Assembly (NCBI RefSeq): GCF_964204645.1
Contig: NC_134030.1
Span: 11,057,947 to 11,121,946 of the forward strand
Length of the DNA stretch: 64,000 nucleotides
Direction: 5' to 3'
From: Tubulanus polymorphus
Lineage: Eukaryota > Animalia > Nemertea
Positions 1 through 22,535 of the stretch are shown one piece after another. The position numbers and the translations under genes are program-made. The notes under the pieces are model-generated. The model was not told where the DNA came from, ran no database searches, and was given only the letters and a program-made list of their open reading frames with translations. How positions within the stretch are numbered: position 1 is the stretch's first letter; every line of letters starts with the position of its first letter.

Positions 1-67
1 TGGAAACGTGAATGAATGGTAAAAACTCTACGTACATTGTATTTTATGATGTTTTTATTTTGCACAG

Positions 68-3000
68 ATGGATGGTTTTTTTAACCATGTGTGTCCTAGG
101 GAGCCACCCCTCCTCAGCAGATTACCATGCAATTGTACCTTGATTGAAGAAAAAATTATTACAGTCTTCGATTCTTATGGTATGTATAATTTGCTCAAGA
201 TTTAACTCTTGTTTTATAAATGACATTATCTGTCAGTAGGTTAAAATGCATGCCAGTATCTGGATTTAGATCTAAAAAAGTAAATTTCTTTAACCAAACA
301 GCAAGAATTCACCAGGACGGTTAAAATCAAAATCAACCATAATTTACTTAAGATTTATTCACTGCTATGTTTGATATTGATTAATAGGTCGATGTGATGC
401 GAAAAAAGTTCAGCACTGCGAATGTCAAAGTCTACCTATTGCTTTAACCAATCATCGTTTGTGGCCTGCATCTCCTTCCCAGCCAACATACGCTGCATCA
501 TTTGATTTTCTCAAACTTTTTACGACTCTCCAAATAGAAGGTCAGCTGTCAGCAAGAGCATTTGCAGACACGTATGCTGTGATGAACGCTTATTCGCTTG
601 ACCAGGTAAAGTAATACACCCCAAGTGCACATCTCCTGTCTATATTTCATTGTTAACTAAAATTTGATGTGCTTTGATGTTACGTAGGTCTCACAGTTGT
701 ATAGACTGCTGACAAGTGAGAGTCTGAGTAGATTTAGATTGATAACTTGTGAGGAATATCTGTTGTCGAAATCTTACACTTATAAGCGGTGCTTGGCTTG
801 TCCTGAGGTATGGCTTCTGGCTGCATTTCTGACACTGGTTTGCCATATAAAATAGACCCCGCCTTAACCGGTACCATTTGGACCTTCATTTAGATTGAAT
901 GGATTACCGGATAGGCAGAGTCTTCTGTATTCTGAAATATTTTTTGAAAATCAATTTTCATCTTCCTAGGATAATGGTAAACTTTTTGTGTCAGCTGATG
1001 CTAATTTTGGATTGGTTCGGAAAAAGAATGCAGGAAGGAGTTACTCTACCCCACAAATCTTAAGACCAATATTTTTAGACCAAGGCAATGTAGATTCGTA
1101 TGTTTTGAGATGTTGTGATACATCCAAACTTGATGATGGTGTAAATATTTTGGTTTTGAAAAAAATGGTTTTGATTGTATACAATATATATTAATATATT
1201 TAATTGAAATTGCCATTTGATTAATTTTTCCAGGAATGTAATAATTTCCAGGCAGGAACAGACATCCGTGCCAAAAACAAAGCTGTCAATTTGGATTATA
1301 CTGGTGTGATGGGTTTGGCATGTTCACGACATGAGATTCCACTAGCGATGCTAAATCTAAGGCACGGTGAAAGGTAATCTAGTTCTGTATCTTACATGTG
1401 CATATTTTGGAACCACAATCAATTGCAAATATGTAGCTCATGAAATCTTCTCTGATGAGTGCCAAGATCATTGGTTTCTGTGTATGTTCATTAGAGGCCA
1501 TTGAATATTAAAATAGTCAATGATTTCATGGAGTCCTTGGATCCCTAGTTTTGATGTGTGAGAATGTGTTTGATTCATATTCCAGGCTCAGTTACGTTGT
1601 TTCGCTGTTGAATCATATGGTTGCAGAGCTGCAAGTTGAGCATAATCAATTAGAATTGGTAGTTATGTATGACATAGCTTGTGTATTGCAAAAATATCTA
1701 AAGGTAGATGCCATTTCTTAGTTATTGCCCATAGACCATGTTATTGAAACAATATCCCTAGTTCCCAAATGAGAATGGTTTCCCTGAACCCATTCTAACT
1801 ACCACGTGCATTTGATATTTTTTCAGAAACCAGATATTTCAAGAATGTTGCCGGGTAATCTCCAATTTGCCATTCCATTATTTCACTGCTATGGTCATCA
1901 AGCCAATTGTCAAGTATGGATCTAACCTAGGTTTAAGTTTTCTTCTGACTGGATCATTATATTTATTTGAAAAAAAAAATGTTTTTTTATCTTTTATTAT
2001 CGCTCAGACAAACTTAAGTCCACGTCGCTTGGAAAATTTTGGTTTGACGGATGGAGAAACTATGGAACGATTTTGGTCTTATATCCGACGATTTGCTCTA
2101 ATCACAAAGGAACAGACTCCAAATCGTAGGTTAGAGTTACTTACATTAGCAGCCCAGCATTATACATGGAAGAAAATGAATAAAATTGGTAAGTAAATCC
2201 AGGATGGTATGGTTATCACATATTGATAATTTTGACATCATTTTTGTTTGTGGTTTCAGAATTCGCATTGTTTGAGCGGTTTAAGAGAGCAGATGTAGCT
2301 ATAGAACAAGCAGAAAAGGAACTTGCCGATATATCATTGATAATTCCAGGTCTCGATTTGTCACCATGTATCTTATTTGCTAGAGGAATAAAGCTGAATT
2401 TACATGTATCTTTTCATTATTTTTAGAAATAGCTACTGGGAGAGATGATATCTTTGAACAGTGGAATTTCCAGGAAAAGGTATCAGTGACTCATAAAAGA
2501 GATAAAGGTAAAAGTTATGGCATGGTGTTAACAAGTTTAACTCTTTCCATGTTGATCATCATTAATGAAATTCCACTCAGCTGTGCTGGACCTTTTCGGG
2601 GTTGTGAACACGTGGCATTGAACTAAGTCAACACCCCAAAACCAATAATTTTCTGAAAGCTCATGAATGGTTATATGATACACTCTAGGGTTTGGGTCCA
2701 TTGAGGGTCACGCTGACTTATTGACCTTTGAATTAGAAATCTGGGAAAAAATGGAGGTCACCTGCCATAAGTTACTAACAGCTTATTCGCTTGACTAGGT
2801 AAAGTAGGCACAGCAGTGGGCACAGCTTCGCCATCTAATAGTTCTATACTATAGTATACCAGATACATGACTGAGATCTCATCCACTTGACAAACCAATA
2901 AAAATTGCCCTATAAACTTTTTTTCAATGAAATTATTTTAGATATATCCCTGGCAAATGAGTTTGCCCACGACATCAGCTATAGTCATCTCATGAGGCGA

Positions 3001-4274
3001 AATATTTAACCCACGGTGTGGAAAGAGTTTTAAGGCCTGTTGTATTGATTATTTTTCTTTTTCAATATTAAGGAAACCCATCCTCATGGCAAGAAAAATA
3101 CGTCAAGCTCTTGTCTACATACTACAGTGTCTGGTAAGTTATAGTAATTATGAGATAAATCATCAGAGGTGCACTTATTAAGTACTTAAATGAAATATGA
3201 ATGTAAATATATTTTTTTTCTCAGTACAATGATAAAGAGCTCTAATGATGGTGCCACATGTATGACCCTTGTTAAAGAGAGAGATGAGTAAGTTGGAGTA
3301 ACTACGTACATTGGTATTAGTTTTCAGCTTGTTTTCTGTCAGTTTTCATTATGGTGGCATTGTGATGATACTGATACTGTTGTCTCGTTTAGACTGGATG
3401 CAAGACTTCAATCAATTGAAAATATTCGGAATCTCACTCGATGGTCCAGTTCTCAATACGAATACATCAATCTAATGGAAGCAATGAATGACAGGAAACG
3501 TTGTGCATATCTTCGACAAATGCGAACCTTAGCATGTGAGATGAAGGTTCTTGATAAAGCTTCAAAAAAACATGCAGGTGAAACTGCCATCCCATGTGAC
3601 ATAATTGCTACATTGTCATTCCTCCCTTGTAAATCCCTTCAGAACAGACATAACTCATGTATATACCCCACTAAATTTTAGGTGGCCAGAAAATTGCAAG
3701 TCGTCTGATCAAGCAGCGGAAGCGGGTTGTGAAAAGTATAAAAAAGGCCATTAACTTGTACAATTGTCTGACTGCGGATATCAACAGAATTAGTTCTAAA
3801 GATGCTCTGAATCTCGAAAGCACAATTTACCAGCCATTGTCTAACGAGGTTGGTCTTTATTCTTCTCGGTGGAGCTTGCTACAAAATTTTTCTCGTATTT
3901 GATTTCCTGTCTTGTTCTTCCTTTAGATGTCAGCTTTAACTACAATGCAACGTAAAGCCTTAGGCAGTTGGTTTACTCTGAAAAGGTCGATAGAAGAAAA
4001 GCAAATGGTTCAGGTTGAACTTTCTCATGTGATACAGAATTTAGAGATTCAACGAGCTGATCTTCTTGCTGCCAGGGAAGATGACGATGCAGATCAGGGA
4101 CTTAAGAGTTTGATATATGAAAAACTGAAGTTCCTTCATAAACGCATTTCCTCGTGTCAAGAAATATACTCAAATTTAGTGGAAAAACAAACTGCTGAAC
4201 CGGAAGATTCCAATTCCGCACTGTATACTTTTGATTCTGATGATCAAGAGTCTGACACAGAAGTAGTTGTTTAA
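68..4274 (+). CDS. KDZ-superfamily transposase with N-terminal CxC (CxC1-like) cysteine cluster; 15 coding exons, ~710 aa, reading frame intact
   Basis: Manually spliced GT-AG exons (68-179, 388-605, 688-807, 970-1140, 1234-1373, 1586-1703, 1827-1913, 2008-2188, 2260-2349, 2427-2507, ~3073-3133, ~3225-3287, ~3393-3577, 3682-3848, 3927-4274) join in phase. Motifs: CEC..LWPASPSQP (CxC), CLACP, SADANF, GLACSRHE..GER, YDIAC, IPLFHCYGHQANCQ, GLTDGETMERFWS, GQKIA..YN. The true start may lie upstream. Confidence 0.9.
1395..1552 (+). mobile_element. Diverged fragment of the HINE family (one core unit plus 3' end) inside KDZ intron 5
   Basis: Resembles the 154-bp unit (accacaatcaattgcaaa..tagctcatga..cattggtt) and ends gtccttggatccctagtt, like 6254-6270. 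Confidence 0.65.
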
Positions 4275-4789
4275 TTTTGAATTTAGGCCACACAAATTTG
4301 GAATTTAGGCCACAGAAAAGAAAACTCGCGCCCGACTGACCCGATATTTCGTCGTTTCAAATAATCATTTTCAGAATAAGATATAATTGCCTATCGACCC
4401 TTTTTCAAAATTTTGGGTGAAATAACTTTTTTCAAAAATATATTTGGCCGACCGACTACCAAACTCCTTTCTCGTAATTTTTTTTTTTTTAAATCAAATC
4501 ATTATATCGGCACAGATCATTATCAAAAAATATTTTATTACATCGGATGTTACAAATTTGATTGGAAATGGTGCAGCCATGGAAATGGTGCAGCCATGGA
4601 AATGGTGCAGCCATGCTCAGACAACTTTGCTAATCGGACATTGATGGCGACCTTGGATTGTAAAATTAAAATTCCCGGAATTCCGTGAAATATGTTCAAA
4701 ATATAATTTTTTATAGGTAATTATACAAACACCTCAATTTCCTTTTATTATTGTGGTCTACTAGCTGTTGATCATATTCCTGACTAAAA

Positions 4790-10086: not shown

Positions 10087-11768
10087 ATGGCTGAATGTCT
10101 AGGCGTGGATCTGGATGCAAGTAGCGATATTAGTGGAATAGAACCATTCGATGTAAGTGATGAAGACGATAGTGACAAAGAACAAGGCCGGCAGAAGAAA
10201 GTCGGCAGTGAAACCCCGATCCTCGGTACGCCCGTTGAAACAGATGGGCTCCGACTCAACAACCAGTACCCGGCCAACAAGCTTACTGGAGCTGCTGTAA
10301 AAGGTCGTAATTGTTTAAATTTATATACTGTCAAGGCATAGCTGTAGGACTTGGTATTAGCTGATCTGATGTCAATGATAAGTAAGAAACCTCTTTATTT
10401 ACTTCGCACAGAGTCAGAGAGAATACGAGTGGGATTTGCGTATGTTCGTAAGTTTCCTCCCAGATGTATGGGTGTGATAAATGTAGCGGAAAATACACAG
10501 GCCCAAAAACAGATCTGTGGACTACATGATATTCCACCAACATGCCCCTATGGAAGTGGGGATCTGGTCGTTGAAATACACGGAAATGGCTATGGTTATT
10601 TGTAAGTATGGACAATAAATCCTCTTATCAACCAAAATTCTTATCTTACCTGTACTAAACTATCTTCTAATTGAATATCTTTCTTTTCAGCTTTTATACT
10701 CATGAATTTCAAGAATTTCTTCCCTCCTGCCCAATTATTGGCGAAATTGATACGATTAGACGCGTGGAAGCTCTGCGGTTAAAGTATGGTGGAGCATTGC
10801 CAATTGGGCCATGGCCAATGGAGGAAGTTAAAGAACATGCAAAATCGATTATACCATTGTTTATGGAAAAAAAAGCAATTGGACTTAAGCCCTCCCTAAA
10901 TATTGGACTTCATTTCCTCGCATGGAAGTATGATTCGATTAGTTTCGAAGAACAGTGGAATATTCATGTCGACCAATTAAAAAAGCTCAAGCAGCAACAG
11001 GACATCGAAGAAAATGTATCTGTAAAACGTGTTGATGTTACGACAACTTTGTCCAGGCGTAAAAGTAATAGACGTCGTGTTGTTTCCGTTCTAAAAAGTG
11101 ACGTTAGCGAAAAGAACCAGGACTCGTCATCAGTTATTGCGCCCGATACAGCTACAGTATTATGTAAAAAAGTAGACAGTGGATATGAATGTTCGGTGTG
11201 CGGCAGAATTTTTGGCAATAAATCAAATTTTAATCGTCATTCAAGAATACATTGCAAAGAACTGAAATTTTCATGCGAGATATGCGGTAAAAGCTTTACC
11301 GATAAGAGCAATTTGAACGTTCATGTTAAAAGACATGTGCCAAAAGGACAATATGCTTGCAATATTTGTGGATTAAGATTTATGTCTAGAGGCAACCTGA
11401 CTGACCATAAAAAGCGTCACACTTCTGAAAAAGTTGTTATTGCTGATCGATGTATTTTGCCTTACTGCAAAAAGTATGGTGAAAAATTTAAAGATCTCCT
11501 TCAGCATGCTCGACAAATGCATAAACTAGATACGATATGTGCCTATAACGAAGCGGTTAAAAAAAGTATTGACAAAAAATTAGGTAGTTCGAGTACCACC
11601 ACAAATTGCCATTGTCCGAACCATGATATCTGGATATACCGTTGGGTTGGCAGCAATCATAATTGTTATCTATGTGAGTGTCCTATGAAATTTACTCGCA
11701 TATTCCACGAGGAGAAGAAAGCACATATTTGGACACGTACTTGTCGCTATTCTTCTCATTTGTTTTGA
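10087..11768 (+). CDS. C2H2 zinc-finger protein with unrecognised N-terminal domain; 3 exons, ~494 aa
   Basis: Exons 10087-10303, 10412-10601 and 10691-11768 join in phase. Three canonical fingers (CSVC..H..IH, CEIC..H..RH, CNIC..H..RH), a fourth atypical CILPYC..H..MH finger and a C-terminal Cys/His cluster. AATAAA at ~12204. Confidence 0.85.
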
Positions 11769-12944: not shown

Positions 12945-13113
12945 CAGGGGCGGTGGAAGCAATTTTTTATTGCTGCAGCCAAATGCCGATTTTGGACAGA
13001 TTCTAAATATTGCCACAGCGAATTTACTTAATTTCTTCAAAAACTTGGTATTAAAAATAAAACGTCATCAGTAAATTATTGTCGCTGCAGTCGCTGCACT
13101 TCCAACGCCACTG
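12945..13113. mobile_element. Small MITE
   Basis: TIRs CAGGGGCGGTGGAAG / CTTCCAACGCCACTG; TAATC on both flanks. Confidence 0.6.
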
Positions 13114-13313
13114 TAATCAATTTATCTACCTTTATTATGCATCACTTTGTTTAGGGTTTAGCTTCGAAAGGGTGAAATGATCAAATATCCACTACCATTT
13201 TTGATCTACCAATTGGCCATTTTGAAGTAGGACTAGACTATAGGCCTAGCAGCCACATCATTTTTCATTGAGTGAATGAAAAGATGTCAACAATTATTCT
13301 TTTTTATTTTTAG

Positions 13314-16300
13314 ATGGACAAAGAATTTGAAAATACCCATTGGCCATTATTAAACACCAAGGAAAGGTAAGCATGCACTTGGGCAGGTCTCTACTATCAA
13401 ACCATTCAGACCTAGTTCTTATAATTAACTGATACATGCACTATCATTACGTTGTTGACTTAGCCTAATGTCGTTCCAAGATCAGAGATAACTTATGACA
13501 ACCTCTCTGATGAACTTTGGCGAGTTTGACTATGAAAGATCTTTTAAGCTACTTACATTTAACAGTCGTTAACTGCTTTAGTTTCAATTTGAATTCAGAC
13601 AGTCTACTTTGGTGTCCTATTATGAGAAAGGGATGACTCATTGTGGAAATGAATTTACCAAAGGAATGGTACGAGAAGCCAGTGTTGCTACAGGCATGCC
13701 AGAGAAATCAGTTAAGGTAGGCCTATATAACTTTTTCTTATGATCTAGGGCCTACGGTGTTTTCTCCAGACTTTGTGATGAAGCACTTTTACTAAAATGA
13801 TAAATTGATAAACTGTATTTTAAAAGTTTTAGTTTATTCTGTTTAAGAAATGGATAGAGAACCACAAGGTACAATGTCGAAAGAAAGCTGGGATTTACAA
13901 CTATGAAAATCTGAGTAAGAAGCAGCGCATTCGATCATGCAGACCGTACGATGTTTATCTCTCTGATAAAAAAAAAGGAAAATGTAAGCTAGATACATGT
14001 TGATTTTAGTCAACCTCTATGTAGTTGCTGAGCCTGTTTAAAGTGAGGTGTGTGTAATTTGTATATCATTTTAGGCCAGGGAAATTGGAATGACCAAACA
14101 GAGGAAGCAATGGCTTCATACGCACAGAGGGCTGCAAGCCACAGCCAGCCTATCGGCCCAGAAAATAAAGAAAATAACATTGAATTTCTGGTGCATGAAC
14201 TAGAAAAAAAGGTAGGCCGTTTCATTTAACCATTAATGTTTATGTTATTTGCAGTCATCTAAATAACATAATTATACTTCAGGTAAATAAATTTACTTCG
14301 ACAACAGAAAAGTTGGATGTTGTGGCTATTGCTATTACTAAGGATGGGAATAGAATGTTTATATGTGGATCACCAATTCCAACAAAGTGGTTTGAAAAAC
14401 AGAGAGAGGTTCAGCAAAGTCTGAAGTCACTTTATCAGCCAGGTAAAGATAATTCAAACATACACACTTTCACTATCATTAACTAAGATAATTCAGGCAG
14501 TCTCAGTTTCTATACGTTTGTTGCTACATTCAGATGATGACAATCAATTAGAAGATGTCAACGTACTGCGATCGAAAGTCACAGATATGTTCAATCGTAA
14601 ATACAGTAAGCATATATTTTAGCTACTTGATTTGATTATACATTCAAATAGTCGAAAAATTCAGCATTTGACAATCGTAATCATTTCATATGCGCCATTA
14701 TATAGCTTCAGCAATAAAGGGTATCTCCGGGACGAGATGCAGCTACAAAGCGGTTGATGCTGGTCAAGTCAGGGCATTTAATTTGCCAACTGGAATAATT
14801 TTGAAAAGACCATCATCTTATGCAAAAAACTCGCTGAAAGCACTTTTGAAAAAGGAAGATAAAATATACTTCGAAGGTACACTGTTTCAACTTACCGGTA
14901 ATAGATATTTAACACACTAAGTTAGACACACTATTACATAATATATCAACATTTATCTTGATGTTGATATATTGAATGTCATTATTAGGCCACACAAAGA
15001 AATACCGTAGTTTCTCAGGTTTTTTCTGGAAAGTGACGCTGGTGAGCAAATTATATTTTCATAGCTCCTTTGAAAAAGAGTTGAAATAAATAGCTCGAAA
15101 CCAGAGACTTATATAAGAGATGCGGGAAGTAAGTAAATAACAAATACAGCGGTGCGGGCGAGCAGGATTTAATTTTTATAATAAAAAAAGACGATTCAGA
15201 TTGATGGTTTGCCAATGCGGGTTAGCGCATTTGAATTTTCGATTTTAATTTAATTAATTTCGATTTTTACTTTTTTTATGATGCGGGTGGCATTTGACCT
15301 TGAAGAACTAGGGTATTTCTTTGTGTGGGCTTAATGAATTGAAATACAATGTACTGGTACTGGTATATGTCTTAATGGAATATGGAAGGATAACATCAGA
15401 ATTATTTCTTATTAGTTGATACTATGAGCCACGAAGAAGCAGCGTCACCAACTGAAGAACTTCAGTTTCCAGAAGCCACTGAAGGTACAACTAAGTCTTT
15501 TTGTCTTATAAACTTACAAGCTATGGTAATATTGGGGTAAATTATCTTGTTTCTCATTGTAGATTCAGATGCTACAGAGATCATCAGAGGTACGTATTCT
15601 TATGTTATTCTTACGTTTAAGCAAAAAAGATATTGTTGTATCGCTAGGCTGAATTATTCTTTCTTTTTTTCATCAGAACCTAATATGGCAAAAAGAAAAG
15701 CCGAAGTCCTCACAAAGAAAACAGGGAAATCAGGTACGTTTTTAACACTAAGCTATGCAGTCTTTGATGAAAATATAATTGCACAAAATCAATTAAAAAA
15801 TTGTTCTCTTTCAGTAATCAAAACTGGCATCAAGAAAAGGAAAATAAATAATGGTAGGGTATGCACGTTTAAAGAAATATTTCAAAGCAGCCAGATCAGC
15901 ATTATTGTGTTTTATAAGGTAAAAAATTGATACCTTGTTTGTCCTCGGCAATAAATTTTCTAATCAGTTTATTTCTGTAACTGCCAGGTCTGTTATTGTT
16001 AGCTTGATCATGGTTTCAAAAAAAGTAAATAAACAGAGTAGATACATGGCCACCTGCGTCAATTTTTAAGCTCAGAAATAAGAAACATGGTATCAATTCT
16101 TTTTTCCTTATATCACAAATACAATATGCTTTTTTCCAAGTAATGCATTGGTCTGTTATTTCAAAATCAATTGATATGTTTTAATGGAAATGAAATGGAA
16201 ATGAAACTGATGGATAATATTAGAATTATTTCTTATTAGTTGATACTATGAGCCACGGAGAAGCAGCGTCACCAACTGAAGAACTTCTGTTTCCAGAAGC

Positions 16301-17501
16301 CACTGAAGGTACAACTAAGTCTTTTTGTCTTATAAACTTACAAGCTATGGTAATATTGGGGTAAATTATCTTGTTTCTCATTGTAGATTCAGATAGTGCA
16401 GAGATCATCAGAGGTACGTATTGTTCTTTATATTTAGAAAATAAATAAAATGAGATATTATTGAATAGCTAGGCTGAATTATCCTTTCTTTTTTTCAACA
16501 GAACCTATGACAAAAAGAAAAACCGAAGTTGTCACAAAGAAAAAGGAGAAATCAGGTATGCAGCCTTCAATTCAGTTAATACCAATCGAATACAGCATAA
16601 CCTTTCTAGTGAACACTTCGCTTCCTAAGAAATTGTTCACTATAGAGAGGTGTTCACTAATTGGAGGTAGCACATATTTTTCCGCAAAACCCAGGTTTTA
16701 GAAACCCTTCTTGAAGAACACTCCACATTGAAACCCCCTGTCACGTAAAACTCTGCATTTTTTGCTAGTCTAGACAGTGAACCCGCGTTCAATGCAGAGT
16801 TCAGGCGCCACAATTGACCTTGAACTTGCACTAAAGATGTTGTTCCTTACTACCGAAACTGTGTTAAGTGTAGACGCTGCTCACCGTGAACGCGGGTTTT
16901 CATTGAACCCAGGTACGTTGAAACCTGGGTACAACACGCTAGTGAGGACAAGGTTATTTTGGGATGGGACCACTGTTCACTATAAATACTCATTTGGTAA
17001 AGTTCACTAAATGGTGGTTCTGTTTAATTGAAAATGAGTAGGGAAAATTTGGTTCCCGGGTAAAAGTGTTCTCTAAGGGAGGCGTTCACTAAATAGAGGA
17101 GTTCACTAAGGGAGGTGTTCACTGTAGTTTCGTTTAAAAAAAAAATGATTGAGTTTTTTTTCATTTTAGCAAATAAATCCAGAAAGAAACCAAATGATGG
17201 TATGTATTTATGCAGAAACAGCATCTTAAAGCGCAAAATTTCAATTGTAATATGTAGCCTGTGGTAGTATATTTGATATCAATCTTTAATTCCAGACATA
17301 TTCTTGGTGGAAAAAATTGTTGGTCATCAATCGAAAGGAGGTCAACAATATTACAAAATTAAGTGGTTGGACTTCTCTTCAAAACACAACACATGGGAGC
17401 CGATTGAAAACCTGACATCCGTTATGGATATGGTGATCTCGTATGATAAAAAGATACAAAGTATTGTAGAAAAACATCAACCAATTGAATTGAAAGAATA
17501 A
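13314..17501 (+). CDS. Multidomain nuclear protein: HDX-like homeodomain + HMG-box-like segment + GTF2I-like repeat + C-terminal chromodomain; 16 coding exons, ~470 aa
   Basis: In-phase exons start at 13314, 13599, 13848, 14075, 14283, 14534, 14706, ~15416, ~15563, ~15677, ~15815, ~16239, ~16387, ~16502, ~17170 and 17296. Segments: QSTLVSYYEKGMT..ATGMPEKSVKKWIENHK; RPYDVYL..WNDQTEEAMASYAQRA; LRSKVTDMFNRKY..NLPTGIILKRPSSY..IYF; FLVEKIVGH..YKIKWLDFSSKHNTWEPIENL. A probable 5'UTR exon ends at 12627. Confidence 0.82.
14988..15330. mobile_element. MITE in intron; related ends at ~4285 and ~38540-38573
   Basis: TIRs GGCCACACAAAGAAATACC / GGTATTTCTTTGTGTGGGC. Confidence 0.75.
16593..17124. mobile_element. 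Tc1/mariner-type MITE with a nested inverted-repeat insert (~16685-16935)
   Basis: TA|CAG ... CTG|TA ends; repeated gttcacta motifs. Confidence 0.6.
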
Positions 17502-18125
17502 AAGAATTTATTATAGTACAAGAAACCAATTCATTTACATTTTTCATTCATTGAGATCGGAGTAGAGCTGTTGAGGAAACTTCACTTGCTTTGGTGAATT
17601 TAACAATTAAATTATAGTTTAGTCTACATCAGTCTTTCTGGAAAAGAAAATATTAGAAATGCTGAAATCAATACATATATTGTGATTGGAACAGAGCCCA
17701 AATGGATTACTGAACGAAATGGAATACTGAGCAAATCCCCAAGTTCCTTGAGTGCCATAATTCAGGTACCGGTAATTTGTTGGGGGCTATTACAACTTGC
17801 CTGTTATTTGATTGTATGAATCGCACATAGGTTATCGCACATAGGTTATGTGAGAAACTTGATATCGAAGGGTCCATTCATCTTGTTGATTCTGTCCAAA
17901 TGAAATCGAATATAAATGTAATTACAAATGTGATACTCATGTATAAAAGACGATTTTTAAGTTTAACACATCTACTCTATTTAGTCGTATTACAAAATCT
18001 TTACAATGCAATCAAATATCAACTAGGGGTTAGGGGACGCAATCGATGAGCATGCCCCCATTTGGATCCGAGCAGCCTGCAGACGGTCTCTGTGGCAGTA
18101 CCCAAGAAGTTTTTATTGTGATCGA

Positions 18126-19392
18126 AACTAGGGGTCCAGGGACACCATGCCCACTTGGGAAGTGGTTTCAAATGCTCAACAATCTAACAATTTCAATATT
18201 CAACGCCCTCTGGTGACCATATACAAAAACCAATGACCTTCAACCCAATACAATCATAAAACATGTCAGCAGCTACGATTTTGTAATTGATTGTGATAAC
18301 AAAAAATGCCACGTTACTAATTTAATATGGAAATACTAAGTTAATCTACTATTCAACGCCCCCTGGTGACCATATTCAAAACCCAATAACCTTGTAACTC
18401 ACCATATTCATAGAACATGTCATGAACTACAACTTCGCAATTGATCATGGTAACAAAATATGCCTAGGTACCAATATAATAAGGAAATACCAGGTTATTC
18501 TACTATTCAACGCCCCCTGGTGACTATGTAGAATTACTGATTTCCTTAAAACTCACCACAATCATAGATGATGTCATGAGCTACAACTTTGCAATTGATT
18601 GCGGTAACAAAATATGTATTGGTACAAATATAATATAGAAATACTAAGATATTGTATTATTCAACGCCCCCTGGTGGCCATATACAAAAAACAATGAACT
18701 TGAAACTCACCCCAATCATAGAACACATTATACTCTAAAACTTTCTAATTCATTGTTGTAACAAAATATGCTTAGGTACCAATATAATGTCGAAAAACTT
18801 TTTCCCACCTACGAATGAGTACTAATGACACCAAGATGGCTGCCAATTGCGTCATAATTGGCGGATCAAAAATACCTATCTCGGGTATAAAACATCCCTT
18901 TACAAAGAATACCCATCACAAATTGCAATGAGAAATGGCAAACCAGTAGGAAGCTACAGGACCTAGAATTCTGGCCAAAATTGACATTTTTGGGCACTAA
19001 AAAGGTCATAGGACGGCCATCTTGAGTCAGATGGACCCAATTTTTCTTATGCTGATGGGCCCTTGGTAGATTCAAATATATTCGAAAGATCAAGGTAATT
19101 GATCATATCGTCTTCAAAATTTCCCTCGTAAACTTCGAAAATGTGTAAAAAGTGCTGATTTTGGCAAACAACAATGGCTGCCAGTCGGCCATGTTGATTC
19201 TGATAGGGCCAGTTTTTGGGCTGAAGATGTGTCTAGGGTAGATACATGTATAAACCAAATATCAAGACATTACCTTGAAGCGTCTTCAAAACTTCCCAAA
19301 ATAACTGGATTCCGTCTACGGACAGACGAACAGATGGACGGACGAAAAGTGAACGCAATAGCCCGCTGGGACTTAAGTCCCAAGTGGGCTAA
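18126..19392 (-). mobile_element. Full-length HINE (Helentron-associated element) with 4 x 154-bp core repeats
   Basis: Minus strand reads: T-run, AGCCCACTTGGGA sub-TIR within a hairpin, (GTCY)n microsatellite, tandem cores, TCCCAAGTGGGC, hairpin, CTAGTT. Confidence 0.85.
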
Positions 19393-19837
19393 AAAAGTTT
19401 CATTTTTAAGTCATAAAAATTCACCCTATGTGGAAAATATGTTCGTCAGTCATGGTGACAATGTTCAAATTCAAGAAATCTCACAAAATGGAGGATTTTC
19501 TCTCCTATTCAACTGGACTAAAGGAGTCTTTTTGCCAATCCATCTAATTGGTGCAGAACTGGAATAATATTGGATTTCGGTTGTTGTCCACGATTTTTGG
19601 GAATCTGTTAAGACCTAAATGAGGTACGTTCCCCAAAAAGTAAGCGAGATATCCCAACATAGTACGGAAGCCCTGAGACGAATCTTTATGTCGCGTAATT
19701 TCATAATGTCGTGCATGGCCAAATAAACTCGAAATCTCATTAACTTGGGAAGTTATGAACTGGGGAACTCGTGAACCCAAGATGTCGTCTCAGGGCTTCC
19801 ATACAACAGAGAAACAGGCGTGAAGCTAACACTAACA

Positions 19838-21010: not shown

Positions 21011-21363
21011 CATTAGGCCACCTTACTTACCAGTGTACACGGGGATTGGATGCAGATTGTCGTCTTGATCGAATTCAGGCCTAAAATCCTTGTAAAACGC
21101 GATTGTTATGCCAGCCGGAGGAGTTTTGTATGGCCCAAATAGGCTTCGTCCTTGAGAAGATGGATCTGTCGATAACAACCGACAGTCATGCCGAACTAAG
21201 TACCAAAATATAAATTTGCGACCAACGCGCGCGCCCTTCTGGCAATGAGTATCTAAGAAGGGTTACCATAATATAGTATACTATAACACGAGGCGATAGA
21301 CTATCAAATGAAGGTTTACCCTTCTTTGATAAAGTATCGACGAAGGGGATGTGTATCGGGTGA

Positions 21364-22535
21364 CATATCTCACTCATCACTCGCAATAAACAATGCGGCG
21401 ATTGTAACGATTAGACTTACAATTTCAAATATTATTCGACAAACCATAGGAATCCATCTCACAGTGCCAAATGAGCGTACTCTACATATTTCCCTAGCTA
21501 AACATGAAACGAACATTTCAAACAACGGGAAACGTGGATTTTATTGTTTTCCAGTGCGGCGTTTTTCGAAAACTTACAGAAACTTCGAACGAACATTTAT
21601 TTCGATTTTAGTATCATCAACTGCAATTAATTTGGCCGTCATCGAAACTGCGTTGGATGTTTCGACACCAGCATTCGGACATGGAATTCATTCACCGACA
21701 AAATTTTCATTTGAATTTTAAAAATTGAACGCTTAGTTTCAAGTGTACGTACGCATTACTTTGAATGTTTTTAATGCAGCCTACGTTACCATGAATTTAT
21801 CAGTATTATAGGTGTGTGGGTTCGGAATTCGCTTCCTAAATCACTCGAATTACGAGATAATTAATACGCGTATTCAAATTCATTGACTATGGGAATAACG
21901 ATTAACCATAAGATAATCGCACAGTTTAACCTCAATTATGATAATCTATATATCAATAAATTAGTTTCATAGAATTATAATTTTTACATCAATACGTGTA
22001 TATTAACCATTGTTGCTGGTTAGTTTAATTAATAAGTAGACTGATTATTTTACATGAATGAAATCCATGAGATATGATTAATCACCTGCCAGCTAGCGGG
22101 ACCCGAACTGTTAGGGGTGAAGCTTTAGAACGTGGGAATTTTAATTTCGTACCTGTATTAGTACGAACAATGATTAAGGACCTTGAAATTCGATATGCGT
22201 AGCAAATATAGCAAATTATTCTAATAAGCCGATATAAAGGTAACGTAAATGAGACATTTCACACATCACGATTCGAATTTCTAAGAGCACACGTAGGCCA
22301 ACAAATCGGCTAATCTCTGTCTGACAGGTTAAAGCTAATCCGTTATAGTGCAGCAGCTGATATTGGCCGAATCCGTGAATTTTGGTGAAAGTTTTGCAAT
22401 TTTCAGTTACAACAAGTGGAAAATCAAAGATAGAGAAAATCGATAATCCAATGTGGTAATTTTCGATTTATTTATTTATCGATAAATCATTTGCAGATAT
22501 TCTGTAGAAACTTGGCTAAGATGGTGAACTTAAAC
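21364..22535 (+). repeat. ~1.17-kb direct repeat, copy 1
   Basis: Colinear and highly similar to 34850-36015. Confidence 0.9.

Follow-up and report, generated by a model that had tools for sequence, protein, structure and literature searches.

A Kyakuja-like KDZ transposon of the nemertean Tubulanus polymorphus carries a 16-exon gene combining a GTF2I repeat, a chromodomain and a putative HDX-type homeodomain

Introduction

Why should a cut-and-paste DNA transposon carry an intact gene of 16 exons, and what could a product that appears to join a homeodomain, a GTF2I repeat (I-repeat) and a chromodomain do for it? The question is raised by a locus at positions 13314-17501 of a 64,000-nucleotide stretch of the genome of the nemertean Tubulanus polymorphus (NC_134030.1, 11,057,947 to 11,121,946, forward strand), hereafter the window, to whose first base all positions refer. 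An earlier note, made from the bare letters, had read the locus as a transposon-borne gene with an HDX-type homeodomain, an HMG-like segment, a GTF2I repeat and a chromodomain. We find that the architecture is real, unusual and transposon-borne; 16 in-frame exons with canonical splice sites, together with two domain matches above threshold, are far beyond chance. To the reading that this intact multi-exon gene is the cargo of a recently active KDZ element, and that its product acts as a chromatin-tethering accessory factor, we give a probability of about 60%.

Results

Tracking splice sites and phases over positions 13000-17800 yielded a single open frame of 474 codons plus TAA on the plus strand, which begins with the ATG at 13314 and ends with the stop codon at 17501. 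Every intron is canonical, donors starting with GT and acceptors ending in AG, and the phases chain all 16 exons into one frame. The coordinates and the 16 small exons of the earlier note thus proved exact, and the peptide strings that it quoted were all located, in exon 2, exon 3, exons 6-7 and exon 16. An AATAAA poly(A) signal at 17497-17502 overlaps the stop codon. Part of the product is present in the NCBI annotation as XP_074643312.1, an 'uncharacterized protein' of T. polymorphus found at 100% identity by a full-library search with exon 7. This 236-residue model joins exons within 5-16 of a second copy of the gene (C2, described below), is identical to window exons 5 (from an internal Met), 6, 7, 8, 13, 14, 15 and 16, and uses an exon 13 acceptor 6 nt downstream of that in our model. 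In the C2 copy, exon 5 has a 7-bp deletion, which accounts for the truncated start of the model.

The gene lies within a repeated unit of 25,934 bp, which extends from 4,572 bases to the left of window base 1 to window base 21362, and which therefore occupies positions 1-21362 of the window (plus strand). The ends of the unit are imperfect inverted repeats of about 82 bp that begin CACCCGATAC; the right one, at 21281-21362, ends in ...CGGGTG, and the 7-bp target duplication ACATATC stands next to it at 21363-21369. A transposase exon at 1867-2193 (plus strand) matches the Pfam KDZ family (PF18758) with 39 bits and an E-value of 9.1e-10. When the 268-Mb genome was searched, the 4.4-kb gene locus, introns included, was found in six copies of 96-100% identity, and five of the six are flanked by perfect 7-bp target duplications, each different, the C8 copy being the one without. 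No gene exon, GTF2I repeat or homeodomain-like match was found in the genome outside these six element copies. The marks of a KDZ DNA transposon are thus all present, from the transposase and the defined ends to the target-site duplications and the number of copies, and they bear out the earlier suggestion that the gene is transposon-borne.

The element is a Kyakuja-like KDZ transposon and looks active. For Kyakuja, a 7-bp duplication and CA..TG termini have been reported, and KDZ elements are known to carry cargo genes, those of fungi including TET/JBP genes (PMC12730594). The Tubulanus element shares with them the KDZ transposase, the 7-bp target duplication, the CA..TG termini, the large size and a chromatin-related cargo. 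It differs in its 82-bp inverted ends, which the cited Kyakuja families do not have (PMC12730594), in its animal host, and in the nature of its cargo, a transcription-factor-like chromodomain protein accompanied by a C2H2 zinc-finger gene. The latter is an open frame at 10671-11768 on the plus strand.

The six copies differ in their state of preservation. The window copy (C6) and C8 are identical over the gene with the frame intact, and C4a has an intact frame with 2 substitutions. C12 carries a 1-base deletion in an A9 run of exon 3, C4b carries 17 substitutions and two 1-base deletions, and C2 has the 7-bp deletion in exon 5 and lacks one unit of the exon duplication described below. Between copies, there are fewer differences in exons than in introns. 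Over the stretches compared, the whole C8 copy (C8:2538523-2563932) is 100% identical to the window copy, while its flanks differ from each other, CTAGATG on the left and GAAAAAT on the right; recombination between copies, a flanking deletion or an assembly artefact could each possibly account for the missing duplication.

The C-terminal domain is encoded by exon 16 (17296-17501, plus strand), which also contains the stop codon. It matches Pfam Chromo (PF00385) with 56.1 bits and an E-value of 3.6e-15 against a cut-off of 25.1 bits; over the searches with exon 16 and with XP_074643312.1, the scores run from 52.9 to 56 bits. Among solved structures, those of HP1alpha/CBX5, Drosophila Rhino and MPP8 come closest (E about 1e-8), and all three proteins read H3K9 methylation. 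The window protein has F, W and F at the positions that form the Y, W, F cage in CBX5, so that the chromodomain and its aromatic cage, both named in the earlier note, are confirmed. We class the domain as an HP1-like chromodomain with an intact methyl-lysine cage.

The second domain match above threshold is to the GTF2I repeat, which is split between exon 6 (14534-14605, plus strand), encoding the first helix (LRSKVTDMFNRKY) with a phase-1 intron directly after its KY, and exon 7 (14706-14876, plus strand), encoding the remainder. Exon 7 alone scores 26.6 bits on Pfam GTF2I (PF02946), slightly below the cut-off of 27 bits. Exons 6 and 7, joined in XP_074643312.1, reach 41.3 bits with an E-value of 1.9e-10 over profile positions 1-73 of 75. 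Searched against all Protein Data Bank (PDB) sequences, the repeat segment matches only the eight solved GTF2I/GTF2IRD1 repeats, the best at E 2.1e-6, and the GTF2I repeat proposed from the letters is accordingly upheld. Exon 5 (14283-14442, plus strand), which precedes the repeat, can be aligned, in one and the same register, to the segment that leads up to repeat 1 in vertebrate GTF2IRD1/GTF2I and in a Capitella protein. Comparison of this exon with the TFII-I/GTF2IRD1 pre-repeat region gave hhalign P values of 0.05 and 0.016, and homology to the TFII-I N-terminal region is suggestive only.

With the vertebrate GTF2I/GTF2IRD1 proteins the Tubulanus protein has in common the I-repeat profile, the matches to solved structures and the phase-1 intron after (K/R)Y of the first helix. 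The vertebrate family has 5-6 repeats, however, whereas the Tubulanus protein has one, and the latter also stands apart in its N-terminal homeodomain, its C-terminal chromodomain, its invertebrate origin and its encoding by a mobile element. A TFII-I orthologue would be expected to show several I-repeats and the N-terminal region; here there is a single repeat, and the P values for the N-terminal region are only 0.016-0.05. The protein may work in the manner of an I-repeat protein, but it is no orthologue of the TFII-I family. In public assemblies, we also came across about a dozen open frames of 60-98 residues that cover an I-repeat of invertebrate type in its second half (..RCSYK..GLP.G..LKRPS.YG..). 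Because these frames start and end near the borders of window exon 7, they suggest that the exon structure of the I-repeat is shared by many other animals.

Assigning the N-terminal domain is less direct, as an intron splits it in the window gene and the evidence consequently comes from unsplit relatives. Exon 2 (13599-13716, plus strand) would encode helices 1-2 of the homeodomain together with the first part of helix 3, with the motif TL..YYEKGMT...ATGM, and exon 3 (13848-13983, plus strand) the rest of the recognition helix (KWIENHK) and a basic stretch. Two relatives were used for comparison. LOC143133510 of the fish Alosa pseudoharengus has a DUF4806 domain, a homeodomain-like segment and one GTF2I repeat, and XP_033122800.1 of the crinoid Anneissia japonica has an N-terminal helix-turn-helix domain, four GTF2I repeats and 13 C2H2 fingers. 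Window exons 2, 3, 6 and 7 align to the Alosa protein in the order in which they stand in the window, with Smith-Waterman shuffle z values of 7.1, 3.2, 9.9 and 8.6, respectively. Against a profile of the fish and crinoid proteins, exon 2 gives an hhalign P of 2e-4 and exon 3 a P of 0.014, the latter at columns that follow directly on those of exon 2.

A three-row profile (A7) of the fish, the crinoid and window exon 2 was then searched against the PDB. The best match was 2DA4 ('Hypothetical protein DKFZp686K21156'; E 3.5e-5, residues 12-65 of 80), which is probably a homeodomain of human HDX, followed by the homeodomains of ATBF1 (2DA1, E 0.012) and ZEB2 (2DA7, E 0.13); the Alosa protein on its own matches 2DA4 at E 4.7e-4. 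Likeness to a solved homeodomain is thus combined with a recognition helix of the WFxNxR type, KWIENHK in exon 3. In an Atlas structural search with the crinoid N-terminus, using the Atlas's own model, a chordate 'highly divergent homeobox' cluster came first with a TM score of 0.61, and a cnidarian cluster of 166 members, annotated with GTF2I in 52% and Homeodomain in 18%, came second. The HDX cluster returned when the AlphaFold model of the crinoid N-terminus was used, fifth among the matches listed and with a TM score of 0.46. Both HDX and the Tubulanus protein contain the motif L..(Y/F)(Y/W)..GMT...(V/I)..WI.N(H/R)(K/R). HDX has two homeodomains and is not known to carry an I-repeat or a chromodomain; the leads towards an orthology with the Tubulanus protein are the cluster name and 2DA4. 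A divergent homeodomain of HDX type is the best reading of the N-terminus; the matches establish it for the family, and the window protein would share it.

The HMG-like module of the earlier note, whose first half lies in exon 3 and whose second half is the linker in exon 4 (14075-14211, plus strand), found no support. Neither exon 3 nor exon 4 matches HMG_box (PF00505) at E-values up to 10, nor does the Alosa protein at E up to 1. The distance from the RP.D.Y motif to the W is about 16 residues, where an HMG box, of about 70 residues overall, has about 30.

Two intron positions are shared with the relatives. The homeodomain intron is in phase 0 and lies one residue before the conserved W, between SVK and KWI in the window gene, MVK and NWI in Anneissia, and VIE and NWI in Alosa. 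The repeat intron, in phase 1 directly after the KY of the first helix, recurs in Alosa, in Anneissia and in three I-repeats of the shark Callorhinchus GTF2IRD1. These shared positions tie the nemertean gene to an old lineage, and its repeat to the vertebrate family by descent. The gene belongs to one old animal lineage of homeodomain plus I-repeat proteins, with members in a crinoid, in a fish and, according to Atlas annotation, in cnidarians. All of these proteins keep the order homeodomain, spacer, I-repeat, and the Alosa and Anneissia genes have both introns at positions identical to those of the Tubulanus gene. The partner domains differ, with DUF4806 in the fish, 13 C2H2 fingers in the crinoid and a chromodomain in none of the relatives. 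In the Alosa protein, DUF4806 occupies residues 106-195, in front of the homeodomain. Word-index protein searches with XP_074643312.1 and with residues 1-90 of XP_033122800.1 returned only the queries themselves, and in the literature we found no paper on invertebrate homeodomain plus GTF2I proteins or on KDZ elements with chromodomains.

The remaining exons and the surroundings of the gene can be described briefly. Exon 1 (13314-13366, plus strand) carries the start codon; because an acceptor-like 'ttag' lies directly upstream of it, there may be a further 5' untranslated exon. Exons 8-11 (15416-15484, 15563-15589, 15677-15733 and 15815-15853, plus strand) encode an acidic and then K/R-rich linker in mini-exons that are all in phase 1. 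Exons 12-15 (16240-16308, 16387-16413, 16502-16555 and 17170-17199, plus strand), likewise all in phase 1, are their tandem duplicate. In the C2 copy, one unit takes the place of this duplication; it is a chimera that begins like exon 8 and ends like exon 13/14, as expected from recombination between the units 8-11 and 12-15. Intron 14, the longest of the gene, contains fragments of two high-copy short repeats at about 16678-17132, with many genome matches of 75-92% identity.

Further right in the element, positions 18125-19396 hold a nested repeat of about 1.27 kb, present in the genome in dozens of copies of 91-97% identity and absent from the C4b copy; it either entered after C4b split off or was lost there. 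The DNA to the left of the element (flank piece 1-3375) is 86-93% similar to window positions 31106-34854, some 10 kb to the right of the element, which indicates that its site of insertion lay in or next to another repeated sequence. C2H2 fingers accompany a GTF2I-repeat gene in three phyla, as the neighbouring gene in Tubulanus (10671-11768), as a neighbour in Capitella (positions 4030-4569 of the fetched piece) and as a fusion in the crinoid (residues 600-993). C2H2 genes being abundant, this company may be a coincidence.

Discussion

We propose the following account of what the gene may do for its element. The product would consist, in order, of a divergent homeodomain of HDX type, a short conserved region, one I-repeat, an acidic and basic linker of low complexity built from duplicated mini-exons, and a chromodomain of HP1 class. 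The homeodomain and the I-repeat would bind DNA, while the chromodomain would bind H3K9-methylated nucleosomes. Such an accessory factor could anchor the element, or the complex that transposes it, to particular chromatin and thereby serve target choice or self-regulation, a function at which we arrive purely by inference.

This proposal has parallels among other mobile elements. The integrases of chromoviruses (Ty3/gypsy) carry chromodomains and Harbinger elements encode a Myb-like second protein that binds DNA, so that in both cases a mobile element supplies its own chromatin reader or DNA-binding helper. The Tubulanus element would do likewise. Its chromodomain, however, belongs to a multi-exon gene of its own within a DNA transposon, fused to neither an integrase nor a transposase. 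A layout of two proteins is described for Harbinger elements (PMC12730594).

Several of our observations speak against parts of this account, and they are best considered together with the alternatives to which they lend weight. The most serious of these, which we nevertheless regard as fairly unlikely, is that the element captured a passenger: a host gene with a homeodomain, an I-repeat and introns would have been picked up and joined to, or placed by, a chromodomain exon, and would be of no use to the element. Capture would explain why the introns lie where they do in apparently ordinary crinoid, fish and shark genes, and the flanks fetched around the Capitella, Anneissia and Alosa genes (10 kb) contain no KDZ sequence. 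Cargo genes are, moreover, known in KDZ elements (PMC12730594). Substitutions between the copies, with a nonsynonymous to synonymous count of 15:4, look neutral, for which reason purifying selection between copies was set aside; the same count fits copies that were inserted recently. On the other hand, the genome holds no host version of any exon beyond the six element copies, three of which keep the frame intact through all 16 exons. The pairing of DNA binding with chromatin reading is also what an accessory factor of a transposon would need. The shared introns by themselves do not separate the two directions of transfer, as they are no less compatible with a captured host gene than with domestication from a transposon. 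The earlier note saw in such transposon-borne proteins a possible reservoir from which HDX and TFII-I-family domains were recruited; that a host gene was captured instead is equally possible.

A second alternative concerns the N-terminal module, which could be a generic helix-turn-helix, for instance of a transposase type, with its likeness to HDX arising by convergence or chance. Taken singly, exons 2 and 3 have no Pfam match, and exon 2 has neither a PDB match nor a usable match in an Atlas feature search. The crinoid N-terminus (XP_033122800.1 residues 1-110) does not match Pfam Homeodomain (PF00046) either, and the Alosa protein reaches 16.4 bits (E 0.0079) where the cut-off is 22.9, which leaves all of these sequences below the threshold of that family. 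The AlphaFold model of the crinoid N-terminus is weak (pLDDT 57) and has three helices. Foldseek, VIA and Atlas searches with it returned generic helix-turn-helix proteins, homeodomains being among them at no significance; the structural matches were TetR, Rex and winged-helix proteins with Z below 7, and the Foldseek E-values were above 1. Yet the three best PDB matches of profile A7 are all homeodomains, the W-I-x-N-H/R-K/R motif of the recognition helix is present, three phyla have an intron one residue ahead of the conserved W, and the HDX cluster recurs in two Atlas searches. We consider a generic module improbable. What stands of the HDX-type homeodomain in the earlier note is the assignment by way of the relatives, through the match of profile A7 to 2DA4 and the first rank of the HDX cluster; searched singly, the exons gave no direct Pfam match.

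That the exons do not form one gene, or form a decaying pseudogene with an accidentally open frame, is very improbable: exons 1-4 are known from the DNA sequence alone, the NCBI model of 236 residues being confined to exons 5-16, and three of the six copies (C2, C12 and C4b) are frameshifted, but 16 consecutive exons with canonical splice sites hold one frame, the domain order matches that of single genes in fish and crinoid, and the NCBI truncation goes back to the deletion in C2. The AlphaFold model of XP_074643312.1 from its single sequence (pLDDT 34) is useless. We retain the reading of the gene as cargo of a recently active KDZ element, with a product that would tether the element to chromatin.

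A broader history may be sketched, which we consider unlikely as a whole and offer tentatively. In it, an HDX-type homeodomain and an I-repeat would have arisen together in one ancient animal gene that DNA transposons repeatedly carried or captured. Vertebrate TFII-I/GTF2IRD1 and HDX would then be separated, domesticated descendants of this gene, and the nemertean KDZ element would keep a mobile form, to which an HP1-like chromodomain was added for reading heterochromatin.

GTF2I and GTF2IRD1 are dosage-sensitive transcription factors of the Williams-Beuren region, and to our knowledge the TFII-I family is usually treated as an invention of the vertebrates. The Tubulanus locus and its relatives in fish, crinoid and cnidarians show that the I-repeat is older than the vertebrates and that it stands in the same gene as an HDX-like homeodomain; the Tubulanus repeat has kept the intron of the vertebrate I-repeats. 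With this element, moreover, a giant KDZ transposon with chromatin-related cargo is documented from an animal. With one member of the lineage found on an active-looking KDZ transposon and beside a chromodomain, both the origin of these factors and the part that mobile elements may have played in their spread become testable.

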